From the IMG/VR virus record IMGVR_UViG_3300027782_000025, positions 124,001 to 188,000 of that record: a DNA stretch of 64,000 nucleotides. One strand, given 5' to 3'. Below are positions 15,982-42,216 of this stretch, piece by piece. A program made the position numbers and the translations under genes. Positions within the stretch are counted from its first letter, which is position 1; each line of letters begins with the position of its first letter. The notes under the pieces were generated by a model that worked only from the letters and a program-made list of their open reading frames with translations, ran no database searches and was not told the origin of the DNA.

Positions 15982-17325
15982 TTATTCTTTAGCTGAGAAT
16001 CTAACTGAAGCCGTGTCTGTGGTGAATCGACAGACATCAAAGATAGTTCTCCACTCTTTGGTGTCGATATTCCAACGGTGCTCAAAACCCATTAGTGTCC
16101 AATTACCAGTCCAATTGTGGAATTGATCTGGACCGTCTGATTGATCTAAGACAAGGTCTGCTGGTACTACGCCAGCAGAATTTGCTGGCCTCACGTATTC
16201 TATGTAAACGGTATCAGTGCCAAGGCCGATAGTATTATCTATCAATCCTGCTCCGGGAAAATCAAATCTGGCGTGTATTAAATTATATGCACCGTTCAAG
16301 TAAAGATTTGTAGCTCTATTTCTTATATAATCCCTATACATAAAACCAGTCGAACCATCGTTATAAAGTTCTGGTGGTGTTCTGCTGGCTGAAGTACCCT
16401 TCAGAAATCCAACCGCATCATTTTGCTTGATTGGCCCATGCGGGGTGGGATAGCCGGCAGTTATTTTGGATGAAGTATTAATGTCTTTGACAATACAATA
16501 TAATTCCTTAGGATCACTCTTTATGTCTATGTATTCTCCAGTAGTAGTACTTATGCCACTACTTGCTAACTTATTAATCATCGCTATAAAATCTTCGTTA
16601 CCAATAGCATATATCTCAAAGATATCAGCGTTCTTATAAATTCCTAAAGGCTTTGGCTTAAATTCGCCTTGAGGACAGATATTGATTAGAGGTGGTATGC
16701 CTTCAACAGGCGCGTATTCTTTAACCCCATATACCATCTGAGTCTTGGACTTTGTAAACATCGTGCCCATCTCCATCAACTGCCTGATGAATCGGGTCGG
16801 GCGCTGTCGCATCATATACCAATAATTTTCATCGTTATCAAGCGTCGGTGTTACTTTGTATGGTATTGAAGTATTTTCTGCAATTACTTTTTCTATTGCT
16901 TTTGATATCTTTCCCTTATAAGCTTTCCCACTTGCGCCAGCATAAGCTAGTTGATAATCAGCAGTGGTTATCGCTTCAAAATCAATGATAATGCCGCCAA
17001 AACCACCTCGCGCTCTAACATTAGCTTTAGTCAATAATAATTGAATCTTCCTAGTCGAAGTTTCGGGATAAACACCCTTTGCATATGCTATTTTAAAATG
17101 GACTTTAATCTCTTCTTTTAGCTTTTTTGGATACCAAACATTTTTATAAAAAGCGTCCCAACGCTCTAGATTGGTATCATACATAGAAAATCGTAATTGC
17201 AGACCACCATTATATGCGCCGGAAAAAAATATTTCTGTAACTCCAGGACCTATATTTTCATTTACATAAGGTGGTATAGTCAAATCGAGGACTATAATAC
17301 CGGTCATCTTCGGTGTAAATGCCAT
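15982..17325 (-). CDS. Baseplate hub-like protein (gp27/gpD/gp44-like)
   Basis: 447 aa, beta-rich character; AYKGKISKAIEKV...W..MRQRPTRFI; C-terminal GNWTLMGFEHRW...WRTIFDVCR. Assignment rests mainly on context. Confidence 0.5.
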   Translation of the reverse strand: MAFTPKMTGIIVLDLTIPPYVNENIGPGVTEIFFSGAYNGGLQLRFSMYDTNLERWDAFYKNVWYPKKLKEEIKVHFKIAYAKGVYPETSTRKIQLLLTKANVRARGGFGGIIIDFEAITTADYQLAYAGASGKAYKGKISKAIEKVIAENTSIPYKVTPTLDNDENYWYMMRQRPTRFIRQLMEMGTMFTKSKTQMVYGVKEYAPVEGIPPLINICPQGEFKPKPLGIYKNADIFEIYAIGNEDFIAMINKLASSGISTTTGEYIDIKSDPKELYCIVKDINTSSKITAGYPTPHGPIKQNDAVGFLKGTSASRTPPELYNDGSTGFMYRDYIRNRATNLYLNGAYNLIHARFDFPGAGLIDNTIGLGTDTVYIEYVRPANSAGVVPADLVLDQSDGPDQFHNWTGNWTLMGFEHRWNIDTKEWRTIFDVCRFTTDTASVRFSAKE

Positions 17326-18374
17326 TATCGAGCCTTTATCTTTAGTCTAATCAATGCGTTTTCATCGATTTTCACTAAATTATTGTCAATATATTTTATA
17401 ATGTCTTCCCGCCCTAGACCGGCCTCTGTAATTAACTCGTTCCAGTCCTTAATATTTTTTCCATTACTATTCTTGGGCGGCACCACATAATATATATCAT
17501 TCACATATGGTCTTATTTTATTATAATTCTGAATTATGCTTTGCAAGCCAGCCTTGTCATTATCAGGCGTCAAGACTACTTCCTTGGACCCTGTTAACCT
17601 TAGCTTTTTGCATTGATTATCAGTCAATGCTGCCCCGCCGCTAGCAATAGCGCCAAGGCCGATACTATTTTTATCAAAAATCGATTCAGTGATAAAGCAT
17701 CGACCATTATGAGCCACATCATCAAAACCAAAAAGAAAATCACCCTTTGAAACATTATTAACGCCGACCAATTTTCCTTCTTTATAAATATTGCGGTCTG
17801 GGAAGCGAAATGTTTTATTTATAAAGGAACGTGATTGCCAATATACCATTTCGCCAAATTCGAAGTAAGGCCAAAGCACGTCGTTGCCGCAGTGGTGCAA
17901 TGCTTGATGCTCGACATCTTCTTGGTTATACCCTCTTCTAATCAGCCACATCAAGATAGATGTCATTAATGTAGAGCCGTGCTCATTTATAATCGATGAA
18001 CCGGTTGGTAATTGAATCTGGTCTTCTATTATTTCAGGACCAGAAGGTTCTACAACTGATAAGCCGGGCCTAATCCCAGCAATCAGCCGATATGCTTCTT
18101 CAAAACTGCAATGTCTTACAAGTCTTATAAAATTCAAAAAAGAAACGTTTCGTTTACCGCTTTTAGGATTAGCTTGGCCTGCCCAAGTTTCATCTCCACG
18201 CCAGTCATGACATATACCTTTTTTCGGATTTATGTTAAAATGAAATCCGATATCATCGTTCAGAGGATTGCATATTATATATTCTTCGCCTTCACGTCTT
18301 ACCTTATAGACGTGATTTTTTTTAATATATTCTATAATCTTTTCAGCTGGAAGGTCCCATTTTTTCATATTCAC
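17325..18374 (-). CDS. DNA primase (DnaG/gp61-like, TOPRIM)
   Basis: VYWQSR, CFITESIFD, LTPDNDKAG and KDWNE match the TOPRIM acidic motifs. Confidence 0.88.
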   Translation of the reverse strand: MNMKKWDLPAEKIIEYIKKNHVYKVRREGEEYIICNPLNDDIGFHFNINPKKGICHDWRGDETWAGQANPKSGKRNVSFLNFIRLVRHCSFEEAYRLIAGIRPGLSVVEPSGPEIIEDQIQLPTGSSIINEHGSTLMTSILMWLIRRGYNQEDVEHQALHHCGNDVLWPYFEFGEMVYWQSRSFINKTFRFPDRNIYKEGKLVGVNNVSKGDFLFGFDDVAHNGRCFITESIFDKNSIGLGAIASGGAALTDNQCKKLRLTGSKEVVLTPDNDKAGLQSIIQNYNKIRPYVNDIYYVVPPKNSNGKNIKDWNELITEAGLGREDIIKYIDNNLVKIDENALIRLKIKAR

Positions 18375-18388
18375 CCCGATAAATAATA

Positions 18389-19177
18389 CTAATTTATCAC
18401 TAGGATGAATTTTCTGCTCACTCTAGAGGAGCCATCGGGAAGATTTAAAGTGATTTGGTACTGATATGTGCCTTTTAGAAAGTCAGCAGTGTTCACGTCA
18501 TACTGGACGACATAAGGGTTAGAGCGATAGCTTCCCTGTCTTAAACCTATCCGGCAAGCCGCTTTGTCTACCAGAGTTTCACAAAATTGAGTCTGAATTG
18601 TTATTGTCGGACTCAAAAACGGCATTAAGGGATTTACAAGATTAAAGTTATAATCATATAACGGCAGAGGCATCAATCCGACTTCTAAAGTACGCAGTTC
18701 TGGCTGATAGAACTGTTGGTCTATGGGTTCAAATCCAAATCTTATCGTCTGTAACTTATCATTGCAGTACCATGCGTCAGGGAATACCCAGAATCTATGG
18801 CAGCAGCTCAGGTTCGATAATGGCATCGGATCTGTGCCAGCTGTGACAGATTCTCCTATTGGAGTATAATACCATACATCGAAATAAACATCTGGTGCGA
18901 TAAAATCTGCCGGTACCAAAAATGGATAATGGTATTCTCCAACAACATCGGTAGAAACACATAATGGAGCTGGATATTCGGTCGAATCTCTTGGGCTAAT
19001 ATCTATTGTTGCTGCTAGATTAGAAGTTAATACCTCTGATTTATAGATTTCTATTTTAGAAATCTGATATGGCTCAGTAGGCTGACCGGAGTTATAGAAC
19101 TGAACATTCAGGTCTAAGTATTGGCCAAGCCTTCCGGCTATTCTAGGAAACGCAGTTGATAGTGATGAGCAGCTCAT
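18389..19177 (-). CDS. Hypothetical structural protein (Ig-like / BppU-like domains)
   Basis: Beta-strand patterns such as GEYHYPFLVP and GTYQYQITLNLPDG; lies in the tail module. Confidence 0.55.
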   Translation of the reverse strand: MSCSSLSTAFPRIAGRLGQYLDLNVQFYNSGQPTEPYQISKIEIYKSEVLTSNLAATIDISPRDSTEYPAPLCVSTDVVGEYHYPFLVPADFIAPDVYFDVWYYTPIGESVTAGTDPMPLSNLSCCHRFWVFPDAWYCNDKLQTIRFGFEPIDQQFYQPELRTLEVGLMPLPLYDYNFNLVNPLMPFLSPTITIQTQFCETLVDKAACRIGLRQGSYRSNPYVVQYDVNTADFLKGTYQYQITLNLPDGSSRVSRKFILVIN

Positions 19178-19194
19178 ATCATATATTTGATAGA

Positions 19195-19494
19195 TTAACG
19201 CCTTGGCATACTTGGCATTGAAGGCATAGATGGCATACTAGGCCGAGAAGCGCCAGAAGAAGACTTCTTCTCTGCTTCAGCTTGCTTTTCGTTTTCTTCT
19301 TGTATTCTTTTAAGCCACCAATGTCTATCTTCAGAAGACATAGCAGCCTGCTCGAACAGCGTTAGCTTCCCATATCTCTTAAGAATAAACTGCTGCTCCA
19401 TCAAGTTGCTATATTGTTTATCGTATTCCTCAGGCTTTAACTGGGCGAAAAAAGCTTTCAGATATCGGTAGTTCCGCTTTAAACTCGTGATCAC
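19195..19494 (-). CDS. gp51-like tail/baseplate assembly chaperone, possibly the frameshift extension of the gp26-like gene
   Basis: EQQFILKRYGKLTLFEQAAMSSEDRHWWLKRI; 65-nt overlap with the upstream gene; no good Shine-Dalgarno for its own starts. Confidence 0.6.
   Translation of the reverse strand: MITSLKRNYRYLKAFFAQLKPEEYDKQYSNLMEQQFILKRYGKLTLFEQAAMSSEDRHWWLKRIQEENEKQAEAEKKSSSGASRPSMPSMPSMPSMPRR
19202..19243 (-). repeat. 9-nt period repeat encoding (PSM)4
   Basis: GGCAT recurs at 19205, 19214, 19223 and 19232 on the + strand; the protein ends RPSMPSMPSMPSMPRR. Confidence 0.85.
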
Positions 19495-20437
19495 AATGTG
19501 GACAAGTGATGATAACGGTAGTGTCTATACCGGGTGAATGCTCTCTTACCCATTCTCGTATGGTCGACGTGTCTGTAGAGTGAAGTTTTTGTACAAAAGA
19601 ACGAATTGCGATCTGATCTGTGATGCCCATCACACTAGTGATCATTTTTTCAAGATTTTCGGTTATAGAATCGTCAAGATTATTATTGTCTATCTTCTGT
19701 TTATTTCGCTGAGAAGGTAGAGTACCTCCGGATCTAACTGAATTACCAGGTTTAGTATATGCCTGCTTTCTGAATTTTCTTTGCGAAAGAATTTCATTCG
19801 CATCGGATGCCCTTAAAAACCTAACGCCGACGAATACTTCTCGGTTGGTTACTTTAGACATGTATGGTAATATTACCTTAAATGGCTCTCTGCCAACAGA
19901 AGCATCAGCCCAAGCGATCGTGTTGGCTAAATCATTCAAGTCATATTTATGCGTTGATGAAGCATCGCAACTAGGGCAACCGATCATAAATTCATACATA
20001 TTACCATGAGTGATACCTCTAAGGAAATAGAGAAGAAATACTCTATCACCAAGCAATAAATCAGCCGGATCGAAACCGTTCGGAAATTTACAGCATTCTC
20101 TAAAGAGGTAATCGATAGACTGGCCGCTCTGCGCTAAACGTTGCGTAGCCAACACTTTTTCGGCCGTCTGGCCCATGGCTTTAACCATCACGACGCCATC
20201 TGGCCAATTATAATAAATCCCTTTGCTGGGCAGTGTACATTCTTCCCAAGGTATTAACTTATCTTCTGGCAATGCGATTAATTGTCGTAAAAATTCTTCA
20301 TTGCTGCCGCCACCTAGTAGGTTTTGAAGATCTGGATTATGGGCTTCCATCCTTACATCTTGATCGCCTTCTTCTCTTTCAGGTTTTGGTTTACTTTTGG
20401 CGCTGCCGCTAAGTGGAATATCCTCTTCTTGTGCCAT
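19430..20437 (-). CDS. T4 gp26-like baseplate hub / tail assembly chaperone
   Basis: TLPSKGIYY, DLLLGDRVFLLYFLRGITHG, two CxxC pairs (CPSC, CPHC) and C-terminal LPISESFFRP. Confidence 0.82.
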   Translation of the reverse strand: MAQEEDIPLSGSAKSKPKPEREEGDQDVRMEAHNPDLQNLLGGGSNEEFLRQLIALPEDKLIPWEECTLPSKGIYYNWPDGVVMVKAMGQTAEKVLATQRLAQSGQSIDYLFRECCKFPNGFDPADLLLGDRVFLLYFLRGITHGNMYEFMIGCPSCDASSTHKYDLNDLANTIAWADASVGREPFKVILPYMSKVTNREVFVGVRFLRASDANEILSQRKFRKQAYTKPGNSVRSGGTLPSQRNKQKIDNNNLDDSITENLEKMITSVMGITDQIAIRSFVQKLHSTDTSTIREWVREHSPGIDTTVIITCPHCDHEFKAELPISESFFRPVKA

Positions 20438-20502
20438 GTCGGTTTCCCTAAAATAAGATAGAACTATTTGTACTATTATATGTACAGTCTAGAATTGTCT
20501 CG

Positions 20503-21045
20503 TTAATCTTCAGCATAAAGAGCAAAATCGTAAGATATGGTAGCTTCTACTACTTTTATATCACTGCTAGTATATGATAGATCACCGAATTTTATAGATT
20601 TTGGCCAACTTTGGTTTAAAGTGTAAGTCTGGCGTGAAGAAACAGACGGCGTATAAACCAATATTTTACTTTCCTTCTTGTAAGAAGATGCCAAAGCCAT
20701 ACCATATTTAAATGTAAAGACTGAATTCATCCAGATTTTCATTATCTTTAATAGGCCGAAGTTATCATACCAAGTCATCGAAATATCGTCCCAATTTACT
20801 TTCTTGGCGAATTTATATTCGACACTAGAGCCTAAAACCTTTTCTTCTTCTACGGTAAACGTAGGTAGCTTGCAATCTTTAAGTGCCAATAAAGATTTAG
20901 GGCCTGGCTTGTTTTCTAATGTCTGATCCAATATTTTCGACACATCCCAAAAGAAATTTGTATAATACTCATCAGTAACAGTGTTTAAATTAAAGTTAAC
21001 AGGAGCTTTATTTTGCTTTGTGTCGCCGATAATAAATCCTGGCAA
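20503..21045 (-). CDS. Tail tube (gp19-like) paralog 3
   Basis: DCKLPTFTVEE, KFAKKVNWDDISMTWYD, WPKSIKFGDLSY; TTG start with AGGAG. Confidence 0.8.
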   Translation of the reverse strand: MPGFIIGDTKQNKAPVNFNLNTVTDEYYTNFFWDVSKILDQTLENKPGPKSLLALKDCKLPTFTVEEEKVLGSSVEYKFAKKVNWDDISMTWYDNFGLLKIMKIWMNSVFTFKYGMALASSYKKESKILVYTPSVSSRQTYTLNQSWPKSIKFGDLSYTSSDIKVVEATISYDFALYAED

Positions 21046-21075
21046 TTTTACTACTCCTATGATAACATGCTTTAG

Positions 21076-21714
21076 CTAATCAAAACCTGTCATATTTGGA
21101 CTTTTGGTCTCTTTAACATCTAAATAGCGTAAAGTAACGGATACGCTACCTATAGAATCAGCTTCATAATCAAGATTTGATGGTGTCACATTTAAAGGAA
21201 AGCAGTGGAATAGCTCATAAATATGTATGTATCGCCCTTTACCGTCTAATAGCGCTAGTTTAGCATCAAATGAATAGTCTTTAAATTTAGAATAAATGCT
21301 TTGCTCTGACTTAAAGACTAATTTTCTCATCCATTCATATATTCTAACAGCAGGACCGTCAGTCCAAGATATTGGTCCCAATATTTCGTTAAATTCTAGT
21401 TTAATAGGGTTGTGTTTAAATTTACCAGGCCTATACATAGTACGAGGCCCATTATGGATTGAAATTTCTTCAAAATCCATCGTGGGCCTATCACACTTTT
21501 TTAAATAAATTAAGAGATTTCCTGGTGCATCAGAAGACAAAGCACCATTGAAAGCCCGAGCATCAAGAGCAGGTAATAACTCAAACAGCCAGCGATAAGT
21601 TCTGGCTGTTTCTAATAAGTGATTAGGCGTGTTGGTAACTGCATAATCAATACTTTTATTACTTTTATCAGCATTACACTTCGATTTTTCAATCGGAATA
21701 TAAAATCCTGGCAT
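21076..21714 (-). CDS. Tail tube (gp19-like) paralog 2
   Basis: TYRWLFE, KCDRPTMDFEEI, PGKFKHNPIKLEF, LLDGKG, CFPLNVTPSNLDY. Confidence 0.8.
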   Translation of the reverse strand: MPGFYIPIEKSKCNADKSNKSIDYAVTNTPNHLLETARTYRWLFELLPALDARAFNGALSSDAPGNLLIYLKKCDRPTMDFEEISIHNGPRTMYRPGKFKHNPIKLEFNEILGPISWTDGPAVRIYEWMRKLVFKSEQSIYSKFKDYSFDAKLALLDGKGRYIHIYELFHCFPLNVTPSNLDYEADSIGSVSVTLRYLDVKETKSPNMTGFD

Positions 21715-21729
21715 AAAATATTACGCCTT

Positions 21730-22320
21730 TTAGCTAGGCTGTGAGCAATTCGAGCCCAAAGGACCAGGAATTTGAGGATTAGCGCACTTGCGGATAGCTC
21801 TATCGTATCGCATGGTCGCATCGCAAGTCAAGATAGCATCGCCGGTATAGTCTAGTTCTTGCCAATTAAAATTGGTTGGCCAAGTACCATACATATCCCA
21901 TTGCTCATTGGTATTACCCGCCCCATCAACCAATTTAAGGGTTGCTGTCTTTTTATAATTCTTAGGGTGGTTTACGCCAATAGTGTCCAAGCGACAAACT
22001 GACTCTAGCCAAACATACAAGCCCTGAGATATATTAGGATCTTGTTCTACATCATACCAAGTCAAAGTACATGCTTCCCATTCTTGCTTACCAGCGTAAT
22101 AAGCCTTTTCCTGTTGGTGCTGCATGTCTAGTTCAGAGAATTTAAATGTTGGTCTCTTGGCTTTTTGTAATACCAACAGCTCCTTGGGAGTCCAAGCTGA
22201 CCCGCCTCGGCCGATGGTTTCGAAGTACCATCGGTATGTCCTTCTAGTTTCCATGACGTTTGAAGGCGAATTTGCTCCAAACATCCCACCACCGATCTGT
22301 CCAATATTAAATCCTGGCAT
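21730..22320 (-). CDS. Major tail tube protein (gp19-like)
   Basis: RRTYRWYF, AKRPTFKF, YYAGKQEWEACTLTWYD, YKKTATLKLVDGAG, WPTNFNWQELDY; directly downstream of the sheath gene. Confidence 0.88.
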   Translation of the reverse strand: MPGFNIGQIGGGMFGANSPSNVMETRRTYRWYFETIGRGGSAWTPKELLVLQKAKRPTFKFSELDMQHQQEKAYYAGKQEWEACTLTWYDVEQDPNISQGLYVWLESVCRLDTIGVNHPKNYKKTATLKLVDGAGNTNEQWDMYGTWPTNFNWQELDYTGDAILTCDATMRYDRAIRKCANPQIPGPLGSNCSQPS

Positions 22321-22343: not shown

Positions 22344-25235
22344 TTAGATAGTTACAAGGCCAGCAGCAGCCAAAGACTCTTCTGCTGCAAAAGAAGCACC
22401 AGTCTTCAATACAGCCATGTTTAGAACAATAAATTCGACGGACTTGGTAGGTTGTAAGAACACCGAAACCCACAGTTCATTCCTGTCAATCCTTTCAGGA
22501 GTATTGTTTGATGCATCAACGACCACTTTATAGCCAGTTAGACCCCTTCTTGAAGCAATCTCCGAAAGGAAAGGGTTTACTACACTAAAAACCTGCGCCC
22601 AAAGAGTGCGGTCATTAGGTTCGAAAATGAACTGTCGTAAAATGGAGGTCAAATTCTTCTTGATATAAATCATTAACATTCTAACATTAACTCTATCGAG
22701 AGCAGTTGGTGAACGTTGAAGTGTTCGCTGGCCCCAGACAACTATGCCATCCTGAGCGAAGCTAACAATTGGGTTAACACTATTACCAGATCCATATAAC
22801 AAATCCCTTTCGGACTGGGTGGGGTTGTATTCAACAGCAAGGGCTGTTTGAATCCTACCACGTCGTAGACCGGCTGGTGCAAACCAAACTTCAGTATTCT
22901 GGGCAGTCCTTGAGAAAATACCTGCGACATGGCCAGAAGGAGGTACCCAGCGTTCTTCAGCGCTGAATTGGTCAAAGATTCTTAGCCAACTCCAATACAA
23001 AGCACCATACGAACTATTAATTGCATGATCAAGGTCATCATAGAGAAGACCATTATGCCAATCAATAGCCTGCTGTGGTCTTAGTCCAATTGGAGGATCT
23101 ACTAAGAATAAAACATCGCCTCGATTTTCGCAAAGCTGCAGCGCAGATCCGATCACAGCACCAGAGCTAAACCCAGGAATAGCAAGTAACATAATATCAA
23201 AAGCTTCTGGGTTTTGGAAAGCATAAAGTCCAGAACTTGTGGCGGGATTTCCAATGACTGCAGCATCAAGGTATGTCGCTGAATCTGCTGGGTCGGTTGG
23301 AATACCATTAGCCATGCCTCTAAACTGTCTATTGCTAAAAGAGGCTGGTTGCCTGATCTCGCCGTCACCAACATAGGAAGGACGTTCGATCCAATTTATG
23401 GTCCCATTGCCATTATTACCACCTATCGATGAACCAGGGTTAATGATATTGGCGATATAACGAGCATCAGCAGGATCGAATGAAACATCAGATATGGAAT
23501 CGACAGCATAACCAGACGAATCTTTAACAGTAATAATATATTTCTGGCTTGTTGAAGCATTGTTAGTATTAACAAGCTGTACACCGACCGTAAAGCCAGA
23601 ATACGTGTCTCTAACTGCGTCATATTTTCCGACCCACGTTCCAGCAGAAGTACCGACAAACCAACCCACAATGCTCTGATAATACGCAGCATCTTGGGCA
23701 CATTCGTCAGAAGTAGGATCTGTTACACATGATAGAGGTACTGTAGGATCATCGCTTTCCACAGGCATTAGAACACGTTCGTCTGAAAATCCGCGGTATG
23801 CTCCACCATAAGGGTAAAGCAAACCGACTTCTTCAGTAAAGCGTAAAGATTTAATATTAGTATAATTAGCTAGTAAAAACAAAGAATCTAATTCGTTGTT
23901 CGGCGTAGTAGCGATTACAATTACCATACCGGAAGAGTTCGGTACATTAATAGCAAAGGATTCATAATAATCCAATCCAGCCACCGTACCAAAGACATTT
24001 AATTGGCCAGCAATATTATCGGCTGTCTGGGCTAAACCAGCTACCAGATTTGCGGTAATAGTAAAGCTCGAAGAAGGAGATACTATCTTTAAAACCAATT
24101 GGTTATTGTCGGTGGTTATGTCATAAGGATCAGTCTTGGTTGAAATCACTCGCGCTCGTGGTATATCATATTGATACAACGAGACTCCAAGCGTTAAAGA
24201 CCAAGCTTCGCCATTGACTATTTGAATCCTATCGCCGTTTGCTGTCGATCTTATCTGTGGCACCACTGCCCCCGATTCATCAACCGCTGCAACAAACACA
24301 AAGTCGTGGCCGCCAGTGGTACCTAGCACATTATTTAAAGCATCGACTAGATCAGCAGTATTATCATAAGTCCCAGCACCAATGACATCATCATATGAAT
24401 GTGCTATGCCTTCGACAGCGATCCTAAATTTTCTATTATTAGGAGTTAGTTCGAATTGGAACATATCACCAGCACTAATTCGACCAGCGCTAACTGTGAT
24501 GATACCTGAAAGTATAGCACCCTGCACCACAAAAGAGCTAGAAGTGCCGGTGTTCGAACCATCAACCAGAGTACCTTCGGCGACTAGATAGCTCGGATCT
24601 GAGCTGTCATAAGAAGTGTCAACAACACGATAGTCGGCACCGTTTATCTTATAATGTGAATTGGTCGCAGGGTTTATATCTGTGTTACTAGTAACTTCTA
24701 AAACATAAGTAGCTGACAAGACACCGGCATAAGTCCCAGAGACTGAAAGACTAGCTTCTGTTGTGGGAGAAGTAGACTCTGAGGTAGCATTTTGGAATAT
24801 TGGTGTCGATATGCTGGCATTATGAAATACAACGGGATCAGCAACTGTTGGCCTACGTAAGTTAATTCTACCGTAGTCGATTCCAGTGAAGACTGGAATT
24901 CGACCCCAGCCGTACGTTCGGTTAGGAGTGTTATCGATGCTAATGTCTATCAATCTTGTTGGTAAAGCGGTAGAATATTCTACACCAACTCTCATTATAT
25001 AACAAGAATCGCCATCTTCCATGTATGCAAGAACCGCATACATGAGATAACTTTCTACAAACGGTGTGCCGAAAGTATTGATTGCAGATTCAGCGCCAGA
25101 AATAAACGTGGGGGTATTTATTGGTCCTCGTTGAGCAGTACCGATGAAAGCGGGGCGAAGCGGCCCAGCGTTAGAAGCTACAAGCGAAAGGTCTATTTCA
25201 CGAGGATATACACCAGGTGATAGATATACTGCCAT
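22344..25235 (-). CDS. Contractile tail sheath protein (gp18-like) with large inserted domains
   Basis: MAVYLSPGVYPREIDLS, PPSGHVAG, VWFAPAGLRRG, VNPI, WGQRTLQ, DRVNVR, QPTKSVEFI. Confidence 0.95.
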   Translation of the reverse strand: MAVYLSPGVYPREIDLSLVASNAGPLRPAFIGTAQRGPINTPTFISGAESAINTFGTPFVESYLMYAVLAYMEDGDSCYIMRVGVEYSTALPTRLIDISIDNTPNRTYGWGRIPVFTGIDYGRINLRRPTVADPVVFHNASISTPIFQNATSESTSPTTEASLSVSGTYAGVLSATYVLEVTSNTDINPATNSHYKINGADYRVVDTSYDSSDPSYLVAEGTLVDGSNTGTSSSFVVQGAILSGIITVSAGRISAGDMFQFELTPNNRKFRIAVEGIAHSYDDVIGAGTYDNTADLVDALNNVLGTTGGHDFVFVAAVDESGAVVPQIRSTANGDRIQIVNGEAWSLTLGVSLYQYDIPRARVISTKTDPYDITTDNNQLVLKIVSPSSSFTITANLVAGLAQTADNIAGQLNVFGTVAGLDYYESFAINVPNSSGMVIVIATTPNNELDSLFLLANYTNIKSLRFTEEVGLLYPYGGAYRGFSDERVLMPVESDDPTVPLSCVTDPTSDECAQDAAYYQSIVGWFVGTSAGTWVGKYDAVRDTYSGFTVGVQLVNTNNASTSQKYIITVKDSSGYAVDSISDVSFDPADARYIANIINPGSSIGGNNGNGTINWIERPSYVGDGEIRQPASFSNRQFRGMANGIPTDPADSATYLDAAVIGNPATSSGLYAFQNPEAFDIMLLAIPGFSSGAVIGSALQLCENRGDVLFLVDPPIGLRPQQAIDWHNGLLYDDLDHAINSSYGALYWSWLRIFDQFSAEERWVPPSGHVAGIFSRTAQNTEVWFAPAGLRRGRIQTALAVEYNPTQSERDLLYGSGNSVNPIVSFAQDGIVVWGQRTLQRSPTALDRVNVRMLMIYIKKNLTSILRQFIFEPNDRTLWAQVFSVVNPFLSEIASRRGLTGYKVVVDASNNTPERIDRNELWVSVFLQPTKSVEFIVLNMAVLKTGASFAAEESLAAAGLVTI

Positions 25236-27648: not shown

Positions 27649-27971
27649 TCGCAATCAATTTCTTCATCTCTTGTCTTAAAAACAGAATTCTTTTTAGTGC
27701 TATGTAACTTCGCCAAATCATTCTCTGCTCTTATTCTTGGTGTAGCGACATTCCAAACATAATAATTTAATATATCGGTTTCAGTAGCATTACGTGGGCC
27801 GACATTTAGCATATGCCTAACGGTACGATCGCCGGTGCCAGGCACTTTCTCTATGATCTCTTGTATATTTTTGGGTTTTAGATTACAATATTGATTTAAT
27901 GTAAAATTGTTTGCTTCAAGTAGAGCATTGTAGGCCGGCTTTGCTATTTTATATGCGCCCCTCATTATCAT
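27645..27971 (-). CDS. Hypothetical protein
   Basis: 108 aa; ATGA-type overlap with dut. Confidence 0.6.
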   Translation of the reverse strand: MIMRGAYKIAKPAYNALLEANNFTLNQYCNLKPKNIQEIIEKVPGTGDRTVRHMLNVGPRNATETDILNYYVWNVATPRIRAENDLAKLHSTKKNSVFKTRDEEIDCD

Positions 27972-28528
27972 TTTCTTCCGGTAGAGCCAAAACCACCATC
28001 ATTGCGCGCTGTGTGATCAACGACACCAGCAATGATCTCTGGTTTAACTATACATTCGAGCATTGCTTGGGCGATACGGTCACCGTGGTTTATAGTTTGG
28101 GCGATATCGGAATTGTTTTTTATAGAAATAAAGATCTCACCACGATAATCAGAATCAACGATCCCTACTTGGTTAGCTAGATTGAGACCATTTAAACCGA
28201 TAGAAGATCTGATATATAATTTTAACACTAAATCTGAAGCAAATGATGCTTTATATCCAGTCGGTATCAAAATGGTTTCGGTGGGATGAATATATAACCG
28301 AGACATTTCTGATTCTTCAGAAGTAATATCGTCTAGTGCTTCGATATACTTCCTTAAATTTGTAGCATATGCATTATATAAAAAATGCTTTTTTCTTCCA
28401 TTTAGTAAGCATTCAGACATCCGGCGTGTTAAACATGCTGATATGTCAAAACACGCTGAGCCGCTTGTCTCGAATTTCGGCAGCGGCAAATCGTTACCAT
28501 TTAGCCTTTCTAAAGTTATTTTATACAT
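27968..28528 (-). CDS. dut: Trimeric dUTPase with an insertion
   Basis: All five motifs present: ACFDI, RSSIG, GIVDSDYRGEI, GDRIAQ, RNDGGFGSTG. Confidence 0.95.
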   Translation of the reverse strand: MYKITLERLNGNDLPLPKFETSGSACFDISACLTRRMSECLLNGRKKHFLYNAYATNLRKYIEALDDITSEESEMSRLYIHPTETILIPTGYKASFASDLVLKLYIRSSIGLNGLNLANQVGIVDSDYRGEIFISIKNNSDIAQTINHGDRIAQAMLECIVKPEIIAGVVDHTARNDGGFGSTGRK

Positions 28529-29318
28529 AAGGCTCCTCAGTAATCTCTACATATCCCTCATGTGGCCCTACATGTAAACCATGGAAAAAAGCGCCATATT
28601 TTGGCAGTAATAATTTATAAATCTTGTCAAAAACATACCGCATTTCCCATTCTGCATGGCGGGAAGTACGCATCAAAAGTATGTGTCTTAATTCTCGGAC
28701 ATTGACAGTAAAACCTATGTCATTAGCACACATATTAGGCAGGATTCGCCTGATAGAACTGGTTAATTTTTTCTTTTCGTCGAACCTTATAGTAGAATCG
28801 ATATCTAATTCATAATCTAATTCATCGTAACCGGCGCAGATATTCTCTAAGATAGCGTCGATCTTTTTTGAATGCTCTATATCTGGGCTAAGAACAACAC
28901 GTATAACATCCTCTCTGATGTAACGACCAGAATTTTGACTAAACGCAGTACCGACTCTGTGCCTAACAAGTTCATGGGTAAAAATCCTTGAACAGTCTCT
29001 AATAATAAAATTAAAGAATACATGTTCAAAGATACTACCATGCTTGACATCAAAACAGCCTTTAATATTATCCTTTATGGATCTTGTTCTAGTGATGTTT
29101 TTATTTGTCCCAACAACGAATGACTTGTAACATAACTTAGCATATACAGAACAAATAATCTCCATATCAGACACACCAGAAAATCTAGCTTCTTCGATCT
29201 CTCTAACAAATGGCTTGGCATCAGTATCTTCTAAATACTTTGTCAATTGATCTAAGTCCAATGTAGTTTGGCCTATAAGATAAGCGGTCGGAAACACGCG
29301 TTCGATTCGACTATTCAT
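28521..29318 (-). CDS. thyX: FAD-dependent thymidylate synthase
   Basis: HGSIFEH and HELVRHRVGTAFSQNSGRY match the ThyX RHR-x7-S motif; HAEWEMR. Confidence 0.95.
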   Translation of the reverse strand: MNSRIERVFPTAYLIGQTTLDLDQLTKYLEDTDAKPFVREIEEARFSGVSDMEIICSVYAKLCYKSFVVGTNKNITRTRSIKDNIKGCFDVKHGSIFEHVFFNFIIRDCSRIFTHELVRHRVGTAFSQNSGRYIREDVIRVVLSPDIEHSKKIDAILENICAGYDELDYELDIDSTIRFDEKKKLTSSIRRILPNMCANDIGFTVNVRELRHILLMRTSRHAEWEMRYVFDKIYKLLLPKYGAFFHGLHVGPHEGYVEITEEPYV

Positions 29319-33107: not shown

Positions 33108-36100
33108 TTATATATTGTAGTTTTTATCTGGCAATATATCTGGAAAATCCTGTCCGCCTTTATTCTTTTCAAAGGACAAAGCTCTACAATAATCAAGTTT
33201 AGGATAATTACTCTTGATGCGGTTTATTATCCTTATTTTAGGAACTTCGAGATCTACCTTTTTATTAATAATTACTATAATAGTGCGACTCTTGATTTCA
33301 TCGGTATAATTAGCCTCAACGAGATCTACGCAGGTGTTTGAAACCAAATAATATGGTTTATAAATGCTTTTCTTGAAATTTCTGGCGGCCATCAAAGATC
33401 CGACGGTAGCCAACTTGCCGTTAATCTGAAAACTTGGACTAAATAAATCGCGTTCGATCTTAAAAAATGTCGATTTATTCGCAGCAATAGAGATAGTCTC
33501 TGGGGTGCAACATAACTCACCAGCAAACGGGTCGCCTTCCTCTGGAGGAAATGGTACACAGACTAATCCATCTACACCATGTATTTTGGGTGTCAGAGTC
33601 GGACAATATGGTAATGGATATGGATAAGGCCCGTCTGGTACGATATAATATGAAATTGGACTACCAAATAATGTTGTCTCAAAAATAGCTGTTACTAAAA
33701 GAGCACTAATCCTCTTTTTAATAGTAAGCACGTATTCATACGACCCCACAACACCCATATCATTCTGAACAACTACAACATCATTGGGCGCAAATAAAGT
33801 CATGCTTTCGAGGACGCTCTGTATATCTGCGGCTGAAGCGTTATAATATATCCTATCTGAAAAGTAAATGGTTTTATCGACAGATTCGAATTTTAATATA
33901 TAAAACCCTGCAGTAGCATTACTATACGACCATCTAATCTTTTGCGGCTTACCTCCACCTATTTGAATTCTAACTACCGTGACTTCATCGCCAACTAGAT
34001 CGACCGACTGTATGCCCAACTGCTTTATAGGCTGAGCTGTCATTTTACCCTTATATTCCAAAGTCCAATCATAAACATTGCCGTTTTGGACTAATGTTAA
34101 TCCTATATCTTCAGCAGCATAAAAATCACAATTATCAATAATACTTTTCACTATGTCACTATTCGTAGCTGCTGCTTCGATAGGTGCTGTAGTACAAAAA
34201 GCACCGGCTGGGCTGTATAATGAAAGAGTATACCTGCCTGAGTTCGCTTTATAACTAAATTTTTGTACTTCGTTAACGCCGATTCCGCCGATCCAATCGA
34301 CATAAACCACATAATCCTTATTGGAAGTCGATAGCCTTGATACATTTTTTCCAGCCATAGAACCAACGAAATCTATGTGCCAAGGTCCAGTATATGGTCC
34401 ATCATAATTCGTAGTCTGGCCCGAAACAGTTACATTTCCAATACCTATGGACGGTAAGGCAAATAAGGCAGCTCTAACAGTATTAAGACTAGCATCATAA
34501 GGAATAGTAACTGTTTGCTCGCCATCAAAAAAAATCGTAAAAGCTCTATTAGAAGCAGAAACATTGCTTATAGTTTGTCTTTCATTCTTTGTACCGACCA
34601 CAGAACGATTTGTAAAAGCAAAGTAAGTTCCAATAAGCCCTTTGCTAACCGATTTCATGATAGGAATAGCCATACCCTTCAATGACCCGACGAACTCGAT
34701 TCTAAAACTTCTAGTTTCGACTGCTGTTACCAGAACATTGTTTGGTCCGATAAGCGTATTAGATTCTAATATAGTTTTTAAGGCTGCAGCAGTTGCATTA
34801 TAAGGAACAGTCACAGTCTGCGTCACGCCGCTTTTCGCAAACGTAAGTTTATAAGTACCACCATCCGCCAGCGGGACAGTTATATACTGCACTTCATTAG
34901 TAATTGAAGTCTCTGATATGTCAGCTATAACAAAATTTGGTTTTACCTTCTTAGCAAAAAGACTAATAGCTCCTATTTTTGGGTTAGGGATATCGCAGCC
35001 AGAAGGACGATCAGAAGTTAACGATGTACCATTATATATTAATTGGCTAGAAATCGGCGCGGAGCATTGATCAGCACCTGTTCCCGACGTATTATCTAAT
35101 ATTTCCTTGAAGGATAGCCATACGCCTACTTGCCCGTTTATCGCATTACCGATTGGCGGCCCCAAAGCAGTGCCGTTTGCGCTTGGTGGCCTAATATAGT
35201 CCCATCTACTGCTAGGAAATATTCTACTAAGATCTTGCGGTACTTCTAATATAGAACCTATATTAATGGTTCGAGTTAATCTCTTTGTATCTTTATTACA
35301 ATTGGTATAGTCAAGATGAACAACGATATCAGTAGCAGGATCTGGTTTGCAATTTGATTTATTATCAACACAACTTGGTGGTGTGTTGTTACGATCAATT
35401 ATCTTGTTCATTAAAAAGAAATATTCTATCGATTCTACAATCATGTCTGTTTTAAAATCACCAAAGAAAATCGAATAGGTATCTGCGATGTCCGTTGGAA
35501 CGTATTTCCCTGTAGCTTGGTCATATCTGCTAGAACCTGCAGGTATACACCAAATACAATTGTTATATAATGTAACGTCGGTTACTTTGAAATTGGTGAT
35601 AGCTTCCATCTGCGAATCACTTTGCCTTATTTGGTTTAGCACATATTGAGAAGGAGTGCCGCCATTACCGTTCTGCTTCCAATAATTGCATGTATCACTA
35701 TAATCGCAGTCAATTGGAACATTACTTCCAGCATAGGGCGATGACCTCCCATCAGTAATAACTTGACGATAAGCCATCTTCTTAACATTAGGCCTGCCGT
35801 AATCTCTATAAGTTACTTTAACAAAAGCTGAAAAAATATTCACTTCTTGGCGCGGGATACCGGTGACAGAAATGTTTAATTTTACATCTTTAATACCGTC
35901 TAGAATCACGGTCTGATCCAACAGCTTACATAACTTAATGCCATAAACGCCAACACCCTTAGGTATAAATTTAGAGCCATCAAATTCAGAAGTAATCGCC
36001 CCAGGTTTTAAATTATTCTTAAGCGTAATATTAAATGCTGCTGGCATGTCAAACAAGTAGGTCAATGACCCTGCAGTGGTAATTGCTGTCGGATTAACGC

Positions 36101-39057: not shown

Positions 39058-39585
39058 TTAATTTCCTAGAATCTTATAGGCTGTAATTTTCTTATCCGAT
39101 TTCGGACGCGTTACTTTAAAAATCAATCCAAATCGTTTTAAATCGCTATGATTATCGCCATCTGTCCATCTTTTGAAAAATTCTTTTTTCGGCAAATAAC
39201 CATTATTTTTTTTCTTTTTGAATGGGTCTTCAAAAAAGATATTATCTTCGTCGCACCCCATAGCCACTACAAAGTGACCATGATCATTTGATCTTATCAG
39301 GCAAAGTATCGGATTTCCGATTTTAATTTCCTTTTGAAGTCTAGAAAGAGACATGCCGTGGTATTCTTGAAAATTAAGACCTAGTAATTTACAAGCACTA
39401 ACTAATTCTTGTGTGCTTGTGCCTTTGCCTTTGGTACTACCCAATAACCTGGTGTATTTTGATAAGTCGTTTTTATCTTCGGGATGTTCGTATTCATAGA
39501 TCGACTTCAGAGCTGCCGCCCCGCAGTCATAGTCGTGCTTTTGAGCAACCCTTGGCAATGATATATTAACCTTCGTAGTCTTCAT
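39058..39585 (-). CDS. Peptidase C39-like cysteine protease
   Basis: Q..DYDCGAAAL (catalytic Cys), GHFVV (His) and FEDP (Asp); stand-alone, no ABC transporter domains. Confidence 0.85.
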   Translation of the reverse strand: MKTTKVNISLPRVAQKHDYDCGAAALKSIYEYEHPEDKNDLSKYTRLLGSTKGKGTSTQELVSACKLLGLNFQEYHGMSLSRLQKEIKIGNPILCLIRSNDHGHFVVAMGCDEDNIFFEDPFKKKKNNGYLPKKEFFKRWTDGDNHSDLKRFGLIFKVTRPKSDKKITAYKILGN

Positions 39586-40250: not shown

Positions 40251-41063
40251 CTAAATACTCCTAAATAAATTATTAAACACTTCTAAAGCCAATTTAAACG
40301 TTTCTTTCTTTCCAATCGTACTGCCGAAACGCCTTCCAAGCGACGGTCTAAATATAGCATATTTACCACCATTCAAAATATGTTCATCTATAGCCTTAAT
40401 AATATTTGTAGCGCCTTGACCGACAGGATAAAAACCGGAACCAGTTTTAAAATCCCTAGCAATTATGCTATAAACACAAGTTTTAAGAGGCTCAAACCAA
40501 CGATCGTGAGGATTCTTATTGCTTTTCTCCATAAAACGGCAAGGATCATATGATAATTTAAACCTTTTGTGTGACGATAAAAACTTCTGAAGACTTTCTG
40601 TGTTATCTAGTAACATCGTATCAGTCATTTCTAACACCGGTACAAGCGACATCGACACAGCAAATGACGATAGTTTACTAATGAAATCATTGAAACTTGT
40701 CATATCGATAAATGATGATTTTTCGATTCCGATCTGAATAGCTTTGGCTTTAAAATATGATGCGATCGAAAGTTCTCTATCTATATCCTTTTGTACTATT
40801 GTTTTTCCATGTCCCAATTCTATCCTTACGATATTGATAGGCATATCTGCCAATTTTTTCTTAATTCTTTCTATGGTAATGTCCGGCAAAGAAGTTAGTG
40901 ATAATCCATTTATATTAAGTATAGATGCTGATTTGAATCCGCTGTCTCTGATAAGATCTATAGATTCATCGATGTTATCATGATGTTCGTCGATGCAGGC
41001 CGAGACTTCTAAATTATTACGATAGGTCAATGACGTGGTCATATTGTGGGCCAGTTCCAACAA
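40251..41063 (-). CDS. Xylose-isomerase / AP-endonuclease-2-like TIM barrel with a degenerate metal site
   Basis: SACIDE, PVLE, SYDPCRF, IIARD and PVGQG follow the spacing of the sugar-phosphate isomerase/epimerase family. Likely start is 41042. Confidence 0.7.
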   Translation of the reverse strand: MLELAHNMTTSLTYRNNLEVSACIDEHHDNIDESIDLIRDSGFKSASILNINGLSLTSLPDITIERIKKKLADMPINIVRIELGHGKTIVQKDIDRELSIASYFKAKAIQIGIEKSSFIDMTSFNDFISKLSSFAVSMSLVPVLEMTDTMLLDNTESLQKFLSSHKRFKLSYDPCRFMEKSNKNPHDRWFEPLKTCVYSIIARDFKTGSGFYPVGQGATNIIKAIDEHILNGGKYAIFRPSLGRRFGSTIGKKETFKLALEVFNNLFRSI

Positions 41064-42216
41064 GCGTTACAGGTATTCCGGCAACATCCTCAAGCATCTT
41101 TATGAAATCAAGGATCTTCGGGGTAAGTTTGTCTCTTGATGATGAAGCAAAGCAAGTCCAGTCGATGTAATTAGCAAAATTAAGAGCTAATTTGGTAGCG
41201 CCATTAACCATCACAGCCTCACGCAGTTGTCTTTTAGAAAAAGAAAATACTCTTCTGACCCTCTTTGTAACTGTCGTTTTCTCTTTTTCTCTTAAGATAG
41301 TTGCATATTCTAATGGCATCTCTGATTTTCTAGCTATTTCTTCCCAATCAATTTCGACCTGATCGTCATACCCTCCGCCAGAATATCCCTTCTGAACGCC
41401 TTCTTCAATCACATTACCGACTCTGATTGGATAAGGCCGAAGTACAAGGTAAACATCACCAAGGTACTTTGGAGAAATCCCCATATCGGCTAAGTTTTGA
41501 ACTGCAGAAGTGCCACGGCTAGTGCAAGTGGGGTATGAATGACCGTGGTTGATGTCAAGTGAGAATCCTTGTGCGCCTTCATGTAAAAATGTGAACGTAG
41601 CTCTAAGCACACAGTCAATATATTCGTGAAGAGCTTCACAATGGTGTTTACACATTACATTAAATGGATCAAAAAGCGACATGTCCTCTAATATGGCAGA
41701 AGGTCGTGTCCACGTTTTGCAAAATACAAATCTGCTTAACTCTTCATAATCCACTGCTAGCTTCGTCCCCGGCAGCCTTTGTATCTTGTCTGCTATGGCA
41801 GCACCACAACCTTGCATTGTGCTCGCTAGATGCTTAGTGCTGTCTTTGCCTTCATTTTCCCTTGCTCTGTGCTCTTCCGTGATTACCATAGCTCTTTGGT
41901 GAATAATAAGCCTATCTATACTTCCTGTTAATTCTACTTCTTTCATCAGCTGTAGTAAAGTAAATGCAGAAGAAGAACCCATGATTATCCAAGGATTGTA
42001 ATTTGGTAGCCATTTCCTCAAGATCGCAGCCGATGGCATCGCTTTTGCAATATATGCAGTACCGTCTACGTTAACAGCTGTATGACCAGCATTAGCCATG
42101 TTTGTATTTGATAAAAATTCGGGTCTGTATTTTTGTGCGAGATAAGAAGTTATCAGACCTTTACCAGTGCTGCCGAACTGACCATCAGTAACCACATTGA
42201 ACTTACCGCGTTGCAT
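41017..42216 (-). CDS. purZ: PurZ-type N6-succino-2-amino-2'-deoxyadenylate synthase (adenylosuccinate synthase paralog)
   Basis: QFGSTGKG (Ser16 in place of the PurA catalytic Asp), NAGHT, STMQG, HEGAQGFSL, YPTCTSR, PIRVG, TTVTKRVRRVFSFS, LNFANY (not the PurA motif TKLD), GTGP. Confidence 0.85.
   Translation of the reverse strand: MQRGKFNVVTDGQFGSTGKGLITSYLAQKYRPEFLSNTNMANAGHTAVNVDGTAYIAKAMPSAAILRKWLPNYNPWIIMGSSSAFTLLQLMKEVELTGSIDRLIIHQRAMVITEEHRARENEGKDSTKHLASTMQGCGAAIADKIQRLPGTKLAVDYEELSRFVFCKTWTRPSAILEDMSLFDPFNVMCKHHCEALHEYIDCVLRATFTFLHEGAQGFSLDINHGHSYPTCTSRGTSAVQNLADMGISPKYLGDVYLVLRPYPIRVGNVIEEGVQKGYSGGGYDDQVEIDWEEIARKSEMPLEYATILREKEKTTVTKRVRRVFSFSKRQLREAVMVNGATKLALNFANYIDWTCFASSSRDKLTPKILDFIKMLEDVAGIPVTLVGTGPQYDHVIDLS

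Follow-up and report, generated by a model that had tools for sequence, protein, structure and literature searches.

Our analysis indicates that a tail-assembly gene of a large freshwater phage probably gives rise to a short and a long protein from a single message through a programmed +1 slip of the ribosome, a conclusion that rests on comparative evidence alone but that we hold with fairly high confidence. In the window under study (a stretch of 64,000 nucleotides), the minus strand carries a gene for a protein related to gp26 of phage T4 that ends in GAA AGC TTT TTT CGC CCA ... TGA and that is followed in the +1 frame by a domain of 83 codons possessing neither a Shine-Dalgarno sequence nor a conserved start codon. 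The same domain is found at the same FF dipeptide in distant lineages of the T4 gp26/gp51 family, and this might explain why T4 seemed to lack the frameshift used by other long-tailed phages. The features on which our analysis relies are the following:

19430..20437, minus strand: 0-frame open reading frame encoding the gp26-like, presumed tail/hub assembly chaperone of 335 aa (the short, 'G'-like product), with two CxxC pairs (C154/C157, C312/C315), ending in LPISESFFRPVKA followed by the stop codon
19445..19453, minus strand: proposed shift site TTT TTT CGC (Phe329 Phe330 Arg331)
19195..19446, minus strand: +1-frame extension ('T'-like, resembling the C-terminal domain of gp51) of 83 codons, AQLKPEEYDKQYSNLMEQQF...PSMPSMPSMPSMPRR, plus the stop codon TAA at 19197-19195
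19430..19494, minus strand: overlap of the two open frames
20503..22320, minus strand: three tandem tail-tube paralogues (180, 212 and 196 aa) directly upstream of the chaperone gene
22344..25235, minus strand: tail sheath, 963 aa
11257..15936, minus strand: tape-measure-like open reading frame, 1559 aa, downstream of the chaperone gene after three intervening open reading frames

The initial annotation had proposed a candidate +1/-2 frameshift that fuses a gp26-like to a gp51-like chaperone, and the underlying observation is confirmed. The run of six T lies at 19453-19448 and the 0-frame stop codon at 19432-19430. The downstream open reading frame, if taken from the GTG at 19494, ends at 19195 (99 aa) and overlaps the upstream one by 65 nt; it reads GCT TTT TTC GCC CAG across the site and is hence in the +1 (equivalently -2) frame, whereas the -1 frame (CTT TTT TCG CCC AGT TAA) stops at once. 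Neither the GTG nor the first ATG (19401-19399) is preceded by a purine-rich Shine-Dalgarno motif, although many other genes of the window possess one (for example AAAGGAG, AGAGGAG and TAGGAG), and an SD-like TAGGGAAAC is present upstream of the ATG of the gp26-like gene itself. The pattern is more than chance. In-frame TTT TTT Cnn occurs only twice in the 18,603 codons of the window's genes.

A DNA search of the phage collection with this locus found nothing close, but the site and the frame relation are kept in all 42 distinct relatives that we examined (42-96% identity). In these, the second Phe codon is TTT 42 times and TTC never, the first Phe codon is TTT in 37 and TTC in 5, and the Arg codon is CGN 42 times and AGR never. 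Elsewhere in the same genes, the ratio of TTT to TTC is 251:246 and AGR makes up 35% of the Arg codons, while other invariant residues nearby (Cys, Leu, Pro, Ile) vary freely at synonymous sites. Conservation of the site thus exceeds the constraint imposed by the protein, although FFRP is itself a conserved protein motif that accounts for part of it. That the frame break is an artefact of sequencing or assembly, or a recent mutation that split a once continuous gp51-like gene, would be conceivable given the error-prone nature of homopolymer runs and the continuity of T4 gp51. This possibility is effectively refuted by the recurrence of the same break in the 42 relatives and in many distant lineages, by independent DNA assemblies from other samples (X4, and X6 at 95-99% identity) that cross the T-run without any indel, and by the fact that none of the 120 best family hits (309-377 aa) is an in-frame fusion.

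The +1 domain is present in every relative (62-105 aa), but no start codon is conserved. The GTG at 19494-19492 is merely formed by the Cys315 codon TGT plus the next G, and it is absent from the related loci L014 and L077 (TGT TCA). At least 14 of 43 loci have no ATG, GTG or TTG in the +1 frame upstream of the site, and in 5 loci this frame opens only 4 codons before it. The position of the internal Met is occupied by CTT, CTC, CTG, TTA or AGG in several loci, and LIS04 has no start codon in the whole gap. Consistent with a fusion, the third-position wobble pattern of the +1 frame begins just after the 0-frame stop codon and upstream of the internal Met, the stretch between the site and this Met is conserved as protein, and in an AF2 model of the extension (pLDDT 84.6; helices 4-23, 29-33 and 37-63, followed by a disordered PSMP tail) the first predicted helix starts at residue 4. 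These data make it unlikely that two separate proteins are produced without a fusion, be it through initiation at GTG 19494 or ATG 19401 or through reinitiation after the 0-frame UGA. Such a reading can draw on the listing of the small open reading frame by gene callers as a separate hypothetical protein of 47-119 aa, on an ATG about 30 nt after the 0-frame stop codon in the window and in many relatives, and on the fact that reinitiation needs no Shine-Dalgarno sequence; it does not, however, explain the invariant TTT_C, nor the T TTT TTC heptamers found in lineages that use the -1 frame (see below).

In our best reading, most ribosomes decode the 0-frame up to the UGA and release the protein of 335 aa. 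A minority, with tRNA-Phe in the P site on the second UUU (19450-19448) and the comparatively rare CGC codon waiting in the A site, would slip one base forward onto UUC (19449-19447), continue with GCC (19446-19444) and add the predicted three-helix domain with its proline-rich tail, so that the predicted fusion protein comprises 330 + 83 = 413 aa. Two other routes to a fusion were considered. A loss of one U in the U6 run by a slipping RNA polymerase would yield the identical protein, and the site is indeed a homopolymer (T6 here, T7 in Mel-JY01, T9 in RsoM2USA). However, 5 of the 42 close relatives, as well as HSE3, GXN1 and the locus L095, carry TTC TTT C, a run of only three T with the same frame relation; six T is probably short for slippage by a bacterial polymerase; and the invariant base is the C after the second TTT, which matters for tRNA re-pairing and not for the polymerase. 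Transcriptional slippage is consequently improbable, although RNA contigs from a lake metatranscriptome that cover 19540-20457 and 18900-19008 do not span the junction and can speak neither to this point nor to a single transcript. A -2 ribosomal shift on the T6 run, giving ESFFFAQLK with one extra Phe instead of ESFFAQLK, is less likely still, despite the identity of the +1 and -2 frames and the re-pairing two bases back that T6 would allow: relatives with TTC TTT C cannot re-pair at -2 (TTT to CTT) but can at +1, and -2 shifts are presumably the rarer event.

What might stimulate the shift did not emerge from our data. In-frame TTT_C is common, occurring 62 times in the window's genes and 3 times in this open reading frame, so that the motif alone cannot provide efficient shifting. 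RNAalifold predicted no conserved structure for 35 junctions (0 pairs), we found no conserved upstream SD-like element, and CGN is only moderately rare here, with all four CGN codons occurring among the relatives. A GGAAC-N4-GUUCC hairpin seen in many relatives lies over the codons for MEQQFQ and is absent from the window; we regard it as a by-product of the protein motif. No tRNA genes are present in the window.

Distant lineages place the same domain at the same FF dipeptide, and their slippery motif matches the frame. Bacillus, Listeria, Streptococcus and Microcystis phages and one huge phage use the +1 frame; the +1 lineages (HSE3, GXN1, LIS04, the loci L092 and L095, LR756508 and Mel-JY01) carry TTT_C or a T-run, with TTT_C itself being found in Bacillus phage HSE3, Streptococcus phage GXN1, L092, L095 and LR756508. 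One member of a +1 lineage, the locus L097 (TTA TTC AAT CCC AGT), lacks TTT_C and would need another site such as CCC_A. RaK2 plus 3 relatives, PA5oct, RsoM2USA, the locus L126 and another huge-phage lineage (LR756511 plus 6 relatives) use the -1 frame, always with the canonical heptamer T TTT TT(C/T).

The 0-frame protein belongs to the PF12322 (T4_baseplate) family, with 37.5 bits against a cut-off of 24.5 (2.7e-9; profile positions 9-219 of 219, residues 78-331), and it also matches phrog_150 (baseplate hub, 4.3e-13). C154, C157, C312, C315 and F329 are invariant across the window protein, homologues from Firmicute phages, RaK2 and T4 gp26/gp51, and they are invariant or nearly so in an alignment of 40 sequences. 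The AF2 model of the protein (pLDDT 81.7, pTM 0.78) had 66 Foldseek matches in BFVD at E <= 0.001, the best being the 'baseplate hub subunit' of SP-15 (7.9e-19, target TM 0.84). Foldseek against the PDB gave no significant match, and sequence searches of the PDB with T4 gp51 and with the family profile found nothing. The three best of 48,161 PDB chains for the N-terminal domain are an uncharacterised protein from Bacillus (Geobacillus) stearothermophilus (3fgx_B, Z 5.6), the HK97 tail assembly chaperone (2ob9, Z 5.4, 91 residues) and YqbN from B. subtilis (3klu, Z 5.3); all of these are weak, and so is the link to the chaperone fold.

The genomic context is compatible with a chaperone role. 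The gene directly follows the three tube paralogues (phrog_4542 tail tube, 1e-16 to 1e-19; PF06841 gp19), which in turn are preceded by the sheath gene (phrog_23, 1.8e-84). The tape-measure-like gene, itself a weak match (phrog_167, 7.9e-8), is not adjacent in this window, as open reading frames of unknown function (18389-19177), for a primase (17325-18374) and again of unknown function (15982-17325) intervene. In HSE3 and LIS04, the order is sheath, tube, the homologue, a small open reading frame or gap, and tape measure. A predicted complex of the +1 domain with the three tube paralogues scored 0.00, without controls, and is no evidence either way.

While the initial annotation viewed the downstream open reading frame as a gp51-like chaperone that pairs with the gp26-like one, it is not a separate gene of this kind; it appears to resemble only the C-terminal extension of gp51, so that the short product is gp26-like and the predicted fused product gp51-like. 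T4 possesses two PF12322 genes, gp26 (208 aa, ending in KEFFELL) and gp51 (the domain plus 48 more residues in frame), whereas the window's phage, RaK2, HSE3 and PA5oct have one each; a six-frame search of the 274-kb contig found one match over the cut-off. The resemblance of the extension to the C-terminus of gp51 is at the level of a lead. An hhalign comparison gave P 0.028 at gp51 residues 222-251, the HMM retrieved T4 gp51 at E 0.25, and an ESM-Atlas look-alike cluster carries PF28602 Gp51_C of Pfam 38.1 (0.93, 176 features, rank 30), as do 25 of 30 named hits for the RaK2-like -1 domain. The extension has no hit in our local Pfam, PHROG and NCBIfam libraries, the Pfam copy used, in which T4 gp51 itself shows only PF12322, not including PF28602; a profile of the domain found only 55 small unnamed open reading frames without Pfam annotation.

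We consider it somewhat more likely than not that the whole PF12322 family is the tail assembly chaperone of T4-type contractile tails and carries an ancient recoding site at its C-terminal FF dipeptide, which switched between +1 (UUU_C) and -1 (U_UUU_UUC) in different jumbo, huge and Firmicute-phage lineages and which T4 replaced by two genes, gp26 as 'G' and gp51 as 'GT'. Programmed frameshifting in tail assembly chaperones is a classic conserved recoding event, yet a major review states that it is found in long-tailed phages 'except T4' (PMC5009743); our literature searches, in which most subscription journals were not covered, found no report of the frameshift described here. If our view is correct, T4-type tails use the same two-product logic as other long-tailed phages, the textbook exception would disappear, and gp51, an essential T4 protein of unknown function, would gain a concrete role. 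The family would then be a natural test bed for the evolution of frameshift direction, and hundreds of jumbo and huge-phage genomes would be mis-annotated at this locus, where a 'baseplate hub' gene is followed by a small hypothetical open reading frame or an empty gap.

The arrangement lends itself to a comparison with the lambda gpG/gpGT chaperones and the conserved G-T frameshift of long-tailed phages (Levin 1993; Xu, Hendrix, Duda 2004, as summarised in PMC5009743). There too, a slippery site sits near the end of the first of two overlapping open reading frames, the second of which has no start of its own, and the expected products are a short, abundant protein and a long, rare fusion. We infer that the two products act like G and GT, that is, as a chaperone of the tape measure or hub plus an adaptor domain that recruits another tail part. 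In contrast to lambda, the frame in this phage is +1 rather than -1, the first open reading frame is three times longer than gpG and carries a four-cysteine (zinc-ribbon-like) module, and there is no detectable sequence similarity. With the T4 hub assembly chaperones gp26 and gp51 (PMC3004832), the gene shares the family and the C-terminal EFF motif; gp26 stops a few residues after this motif, as does the short product here, and gp51 is required for assembly but absent from the particle, as expected for a G/GT-type chaperone. T4, however, uses two separate genes on opposite strands and no frameshift, and identity to the T4 proteins is only 16-18%.

With regard to the shift itself, the site recalls programmed +1 sites that pair a shift-prone P-site codon with a slowly decoded A-site codon, apparently including yeast Ty1 (CUU_AGG_C) and prfB (CUU_UGA), as well as the structural genes of Listeria phage PSA and the probable +1 shift in the tail chaperone of the archaeal virus HSTV-2 (PMC5009743). 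Re-pairing from UUU to UUC would turn a wobble pair into a Watson-Crick pair for the anticodon GAA, next to an Arg codon that is in the minority in this genome (CGC is 9.6% of the Arg codons), but no stop codon is present in the A site. Notably, in contrast to the -1 lineages of its own family, the window's clade avoids a T before the run.

The tail genes of the large freshwater phage studied here lie in a block on the minus strand. The window is part of a 75-kb IMG/VR record, and the same sequence sits in a 274-kb contig. The order of the genes in this block, as read along the minus strand, is as follows.

22344-25235, minus strand: tail sheath, 963 aa, unusually long
20503-22320, minus strand: three tandem tail-tube paralogues (180, 212 and 196 aa), of which relatives keep at least the two proximal copies
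19430-20437, minus strand: ORF of 335 aa
to 19195, minus strand: small ORF in another reading frame
minus strand: unknown ORF of 262 aa
17325-18374, minus strand: primase
minus strand: unknown ORF of 447 aa
11257-15936, minus strand: ORF of 1559 aa that weakly matches tape measure proteins
further along the minus strand: baseplate genes

The 335-aa protein belongs to Pfam PF12322 (T4_baseplate, the family of T4 gp26 and gp51) and to PHROG 150 "baseplate hub". The primase and the two ORFs of 262 and 447 aa, neither of which has any family match, are inserted between the proposed chaperone gene and the tape-measure-like ORF (15982-19177, minus strand), and this breaks the usual adjacency of chaperone and tape measure.

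The initial annotation had proposed a programmed +1/-2 frameshift at a T6 run that would fuse a gp26-like with a gp51-like chaperone, and every detail of the underlying sequence observation is correct. The 0 frame ends GAA AGC TTT TTT CGC CCA GTT AAA GCC TGA, with the T6 at 19453-19448 and the stop codon at 19432-19430. The downstream frame is +1 (GCT TTT TTC GCC CAG), while the -1 frame runs into TAA at once. Counted from GTG 19494, the two frames overlap by 65 nt, and neither this GTG nor the first ATG (19401-19399) is preceded by a Shine-Dalgarno motif, although many other genes of the window possess one. In-frame TTT TTT Cnn occurs only twice in 18,603 codons of the window.

Two scans of IMG/VR yielded 69 loci, of which 42 have distinct junction sequences at 42-96% protein identity. 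All 42 read TT(T/C) TTT CGN CCN (Phe-Phe-Arg-Pro), with a 0-frame stop codon 9-39 nt later, and all encode in the +1 frame a conserved domain of 62-105 residues with the consensus ARxxPxEYDRxYxxLMEQQFQLKxYGxLSLFEQxxMxAEDRxWWxKRLEKE... This domain ends in PS(M/I/V)P repeats followed by RR (19198-19260, minus strand, in the window). The number of these repeats differs (three against four copies) among relatives that are 93-100% identical (loci L023-L088), and this tail is predicted to be disordered. Independent DNA assemblies from other samples cross the T-run without an indel; conservation and these independent assemblies exclude an artefact or a pseudogene.

The site is conserved beyond what the protein requires. 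The second Phe codon is TTT in 42 of 42 sequences, and the first is TTT 37 times and TTC 5 times, whereas a conserved Phe ten codons upstream is TTT 16 times and TTC 14 times, and the ratio of TTT to TTC elsewhere in these genes is 251:246. Likewise, the Arg codon is CGN in 42 of 42, although AGR makes up 35% of the Arg codons elsewhere, and the neighbouring invariant Cys, Leu, Pro and Ile residues use all their synonymous codons. Hence, the base that never changes is the C after the second TTT, together with the T before it, and these are exactly what a tRNA-Phe slipping from UUU to UUC needs. Transcriptional slippage would give the same protein, but it is unlikely where the run is only TTC TTT C. 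A -2 ribosomal shift would add one Phe and cannot re-pair in those variants.

The +1 domain has no start of its own. The GTG at 19494 is made by a cysteine codon (TGT) plus the next G, and it disappears where the next residue changes, as in the related locus L014. At least 14 of 43 loci have no ATG, GTG or TTG in the +1 frame upstream of the site, and in five loci the +1 frame opens only four codons before it. The internal Met of the "LMEQQF" motif is replaced by CTT, CTC, CTG, TTA or AGG codons in several relatives. Codon-position entropy shows the third-position wobble of the +1 frame already at codons 7-15 after the site, that is, directly after the 0-frame stop codon and before that Met. 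An AlphaFold model of the domain (pLDDT 84.6) starts its first helix at residue 4. Gene callers in public data assign this ORF lengths from 47 to 119 aa, as expected when there is no real start. Independent initiation or reinitiation fails on the missing conserved start and on the coding signal upstream of the Met.

The same arrangement appears wherever we looked in the family, always at the C-terminal FF dipeptide, and none of the GenBank records that we inspected annotates a frameshift there. The junctions of these distant lineages are listed below.

Table. Junctions of distant lineages with the domain in the +1 frame
Bacillus phage HSE3: TTC TTT CGT CCC
Streptococcus phage GXN1: TTC TTT CGT CCC
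Listeria phage LIS04: TTT TTT AGT (no start codon and no annotated CDS in the gap before the tape measure)
IMG/VR locus L092: TTT TTT CGT CCC
IMG/VR locus L095: TTC TTT CGT
IMG/VR locus L093: TTA TTT AAT CCC
Huge phage LR756508: AAC TTT CTA
Microcystis phage Mel-JY01: TTT TTT TGG

Table. Junctions of distant lineages with the domain in the -1 frame
Huge phage LR756511 and six relatives at 54-70% identity: (G/A)(G/A)T TTT TTC TTC
Klebsiella phage RaK2 and three relatives at 55% identity: (CG/CA)T TTT TTC
Ralstonia phage RsoM2USA: GTT TTT TTT TCC
Pseudomonas phage PA5oct: AGT TTT TTC
Locus L126: AAT TTT TTC

Every -1 lineage has the canonical X_XXY_YYZ heptamer T TTT TT(C/T). The +1 clade to which the window belongs never has a T before its run, which would create that heptamer. 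The type of slippery motif thus tracks the frame of the downstream domain, and this is hard to explain unless ribosomes really change frame there. One exception is a +1-frame relative, locus L097 (IMG/VR 3300001531_000177, 1880-1930), whose junction reads TTA TTC AAT CCC AGT; it lacks TTT_C and, if it shifts, would need another site, perhaps CCC_A. An HMM of the +1 domain, iterated on six-frame ORFs of these loci, links most of the lineages tested, both +1 and -1 (E-values before inclusion 1e-7 to 4e-3), while RaK2 stays borderline at E 0.015.

In HSE3 and LIS04, the gene order is sheath, tube, this gene, small ORF or gap, tape measure, and this is the slot of the lambda G/GT chaperones. The AlphaFold model of the window protein is confident (pLDDT 81.7, pTM 0.78), and no relative has a solved structure by sequence search. 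A Foldseek search against the PDB is not significant, although the HK97 tail assembly chaperone appears at rank 3. An exhaustive VIA search puts three small proteins on top of 48,161 chains: an uncharacterised Bacillus (Geobacillus) stearothermophilus protein (3fgx, Z 5.6), the HK97 tail assembly chaperone (2ob9, Z 5.4, 91 of 104 residues, model residues 46-147), and B. subtilis YqbN (3klu, Z 5.3). These Z values are low, and we consequently treat this resemblance as a lead that agrees with the synteny and not as proof.

T4 gp26 (208 aa) is covered end to end by PF12322 and stops four residues after KEFF, whereas T4 gp51 (249 aa) has the same domain over residues 1-201 and then 48 more residues in frame. 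A six-frame search finds two family genes in T4 and one each in the window's phage, RaK2, HSE3 and PA5oct. None of the 120 best database relatives of the window protein (309-377 aa) is long enough to be an in-frame fusion. In one T4-like contig (locus L113, IMG/VR 2974754850_000001), the gp51 reading frame ends after 120 codons although tblastn matches residues 1-247, possibly through a frameshift or a sequencing error in that record. The gp51 extension aligns with the core of the +1 domain (motif M..(E/D)R followed by a basic helix), with an hhalign P of 0.028 at gp51 222-251; the RaK2-type domain against the main profile gives P 0.005, and the HMM ranks gp51 as the best T4 ORF, but only at E 0.25. 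According to the ESM Atlas, look-alike clusters of the window's domain include one carrying the Pfam 38.1 family PF28602 "Gp51_C" (0.93, 176 shared features), and for the RaK2-like -1 domain, 25 of 30 named hits carry that family. Taken together, these indirect data make it, in our view, more likely than not that the short product corresponds to gp26 and the long one to gp51. Our comparative evidence strongly supports the interpretation made in the initial annotation, even though the long protein has not been observed directly, with one correction: the downstream ORF appears to be a gp51-C-terminal-like extension and not a separate chaperone gene.

The G-T frameshift has been described as conserved in long-tailed phages "except T4", and a probable +1 case has been mentioned for an archaeal myovirus (PMC5009743). 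T4 gp26 and gp51 are listed as hub assembly chaperones, with gp51 being essential, of unknown function and absent from the particle (PMC3004832), and "proposed roles" were still spoken of in 2022 (PMC9024508). A preprint on phage G lists a "programmed frameshift tail chaperone" without detail, and a multi-omics study of a Listeria phage notes a tail chaperone gene co-transcribed with a hypothetical gene but no frameshift. We found no report of a frameshift in this family, although prior knowledge cannot be excluded as our full-text searches did not reach most subscription journals. While G/GT-type recoding as such is known, the case reported here would place it in the T4 gp26/gp51 family and in the +1 direction.

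The most economical model is a +1 ribosomal shift in which the tRNA-Phe in the P site moves from UUU to UUC while the A site waits for CGN. For the anticodon GAA, this move goes from a wobble pair to a Watson-Crick pair. In this genome, with a GC content of 39%, AGA and AGG make up 64% of the Arg codons and CGC only 9.6%. The product would be ...ISESFF-AQLKPEEY..., a protein of 413 aa (translated in part). However, in-frame TTT_C is common, with 62 occurrences in the window and 3 in this gene, and TTT-CGN pairs are only slightly depleted, with 6 observed against 9.6 expected. No stimulatory RNA structure or SD-like element is conserved. A GGAAC-N4-GTTCC hairpin lies about 45 nt after the shift site, over the codons for MEQQFQ, in many relatives (loci L034, L038, L039, L051, L055 and others), but it is absent from the window and not supported by RNAalifold, so it is probably a by-product of the peptide motif. 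A low efficiency of a few percent, as in lambda, may be all that is needed, but this is an inference.

Elsewhere in the window, a peptidase C39-like protein (39058-39585, minus strand; PF03412, 4.1e-16) is encoded directly upstream of an ORF of 1982 aa of unknown function (33108-39056, minus strand). Furthermore, an adenylosuccinate-synthetase-like gene of 399 aa (41017-42216, minus strand; PF00709, 2.3e-33; phrog_1211 "2-aminooxy adenylosuccinate synthetase", 1.9e-63) lies near a nucleoside 2-deoxyribosyltransferase-like gene, a dUTPase and a thymidylate synthase (these three at 43166-43555, 27968-28528 and 28521-29318). A PurA/PurZ-like enzyme in a phage could point to modified (2-aminoadenine) DNA.
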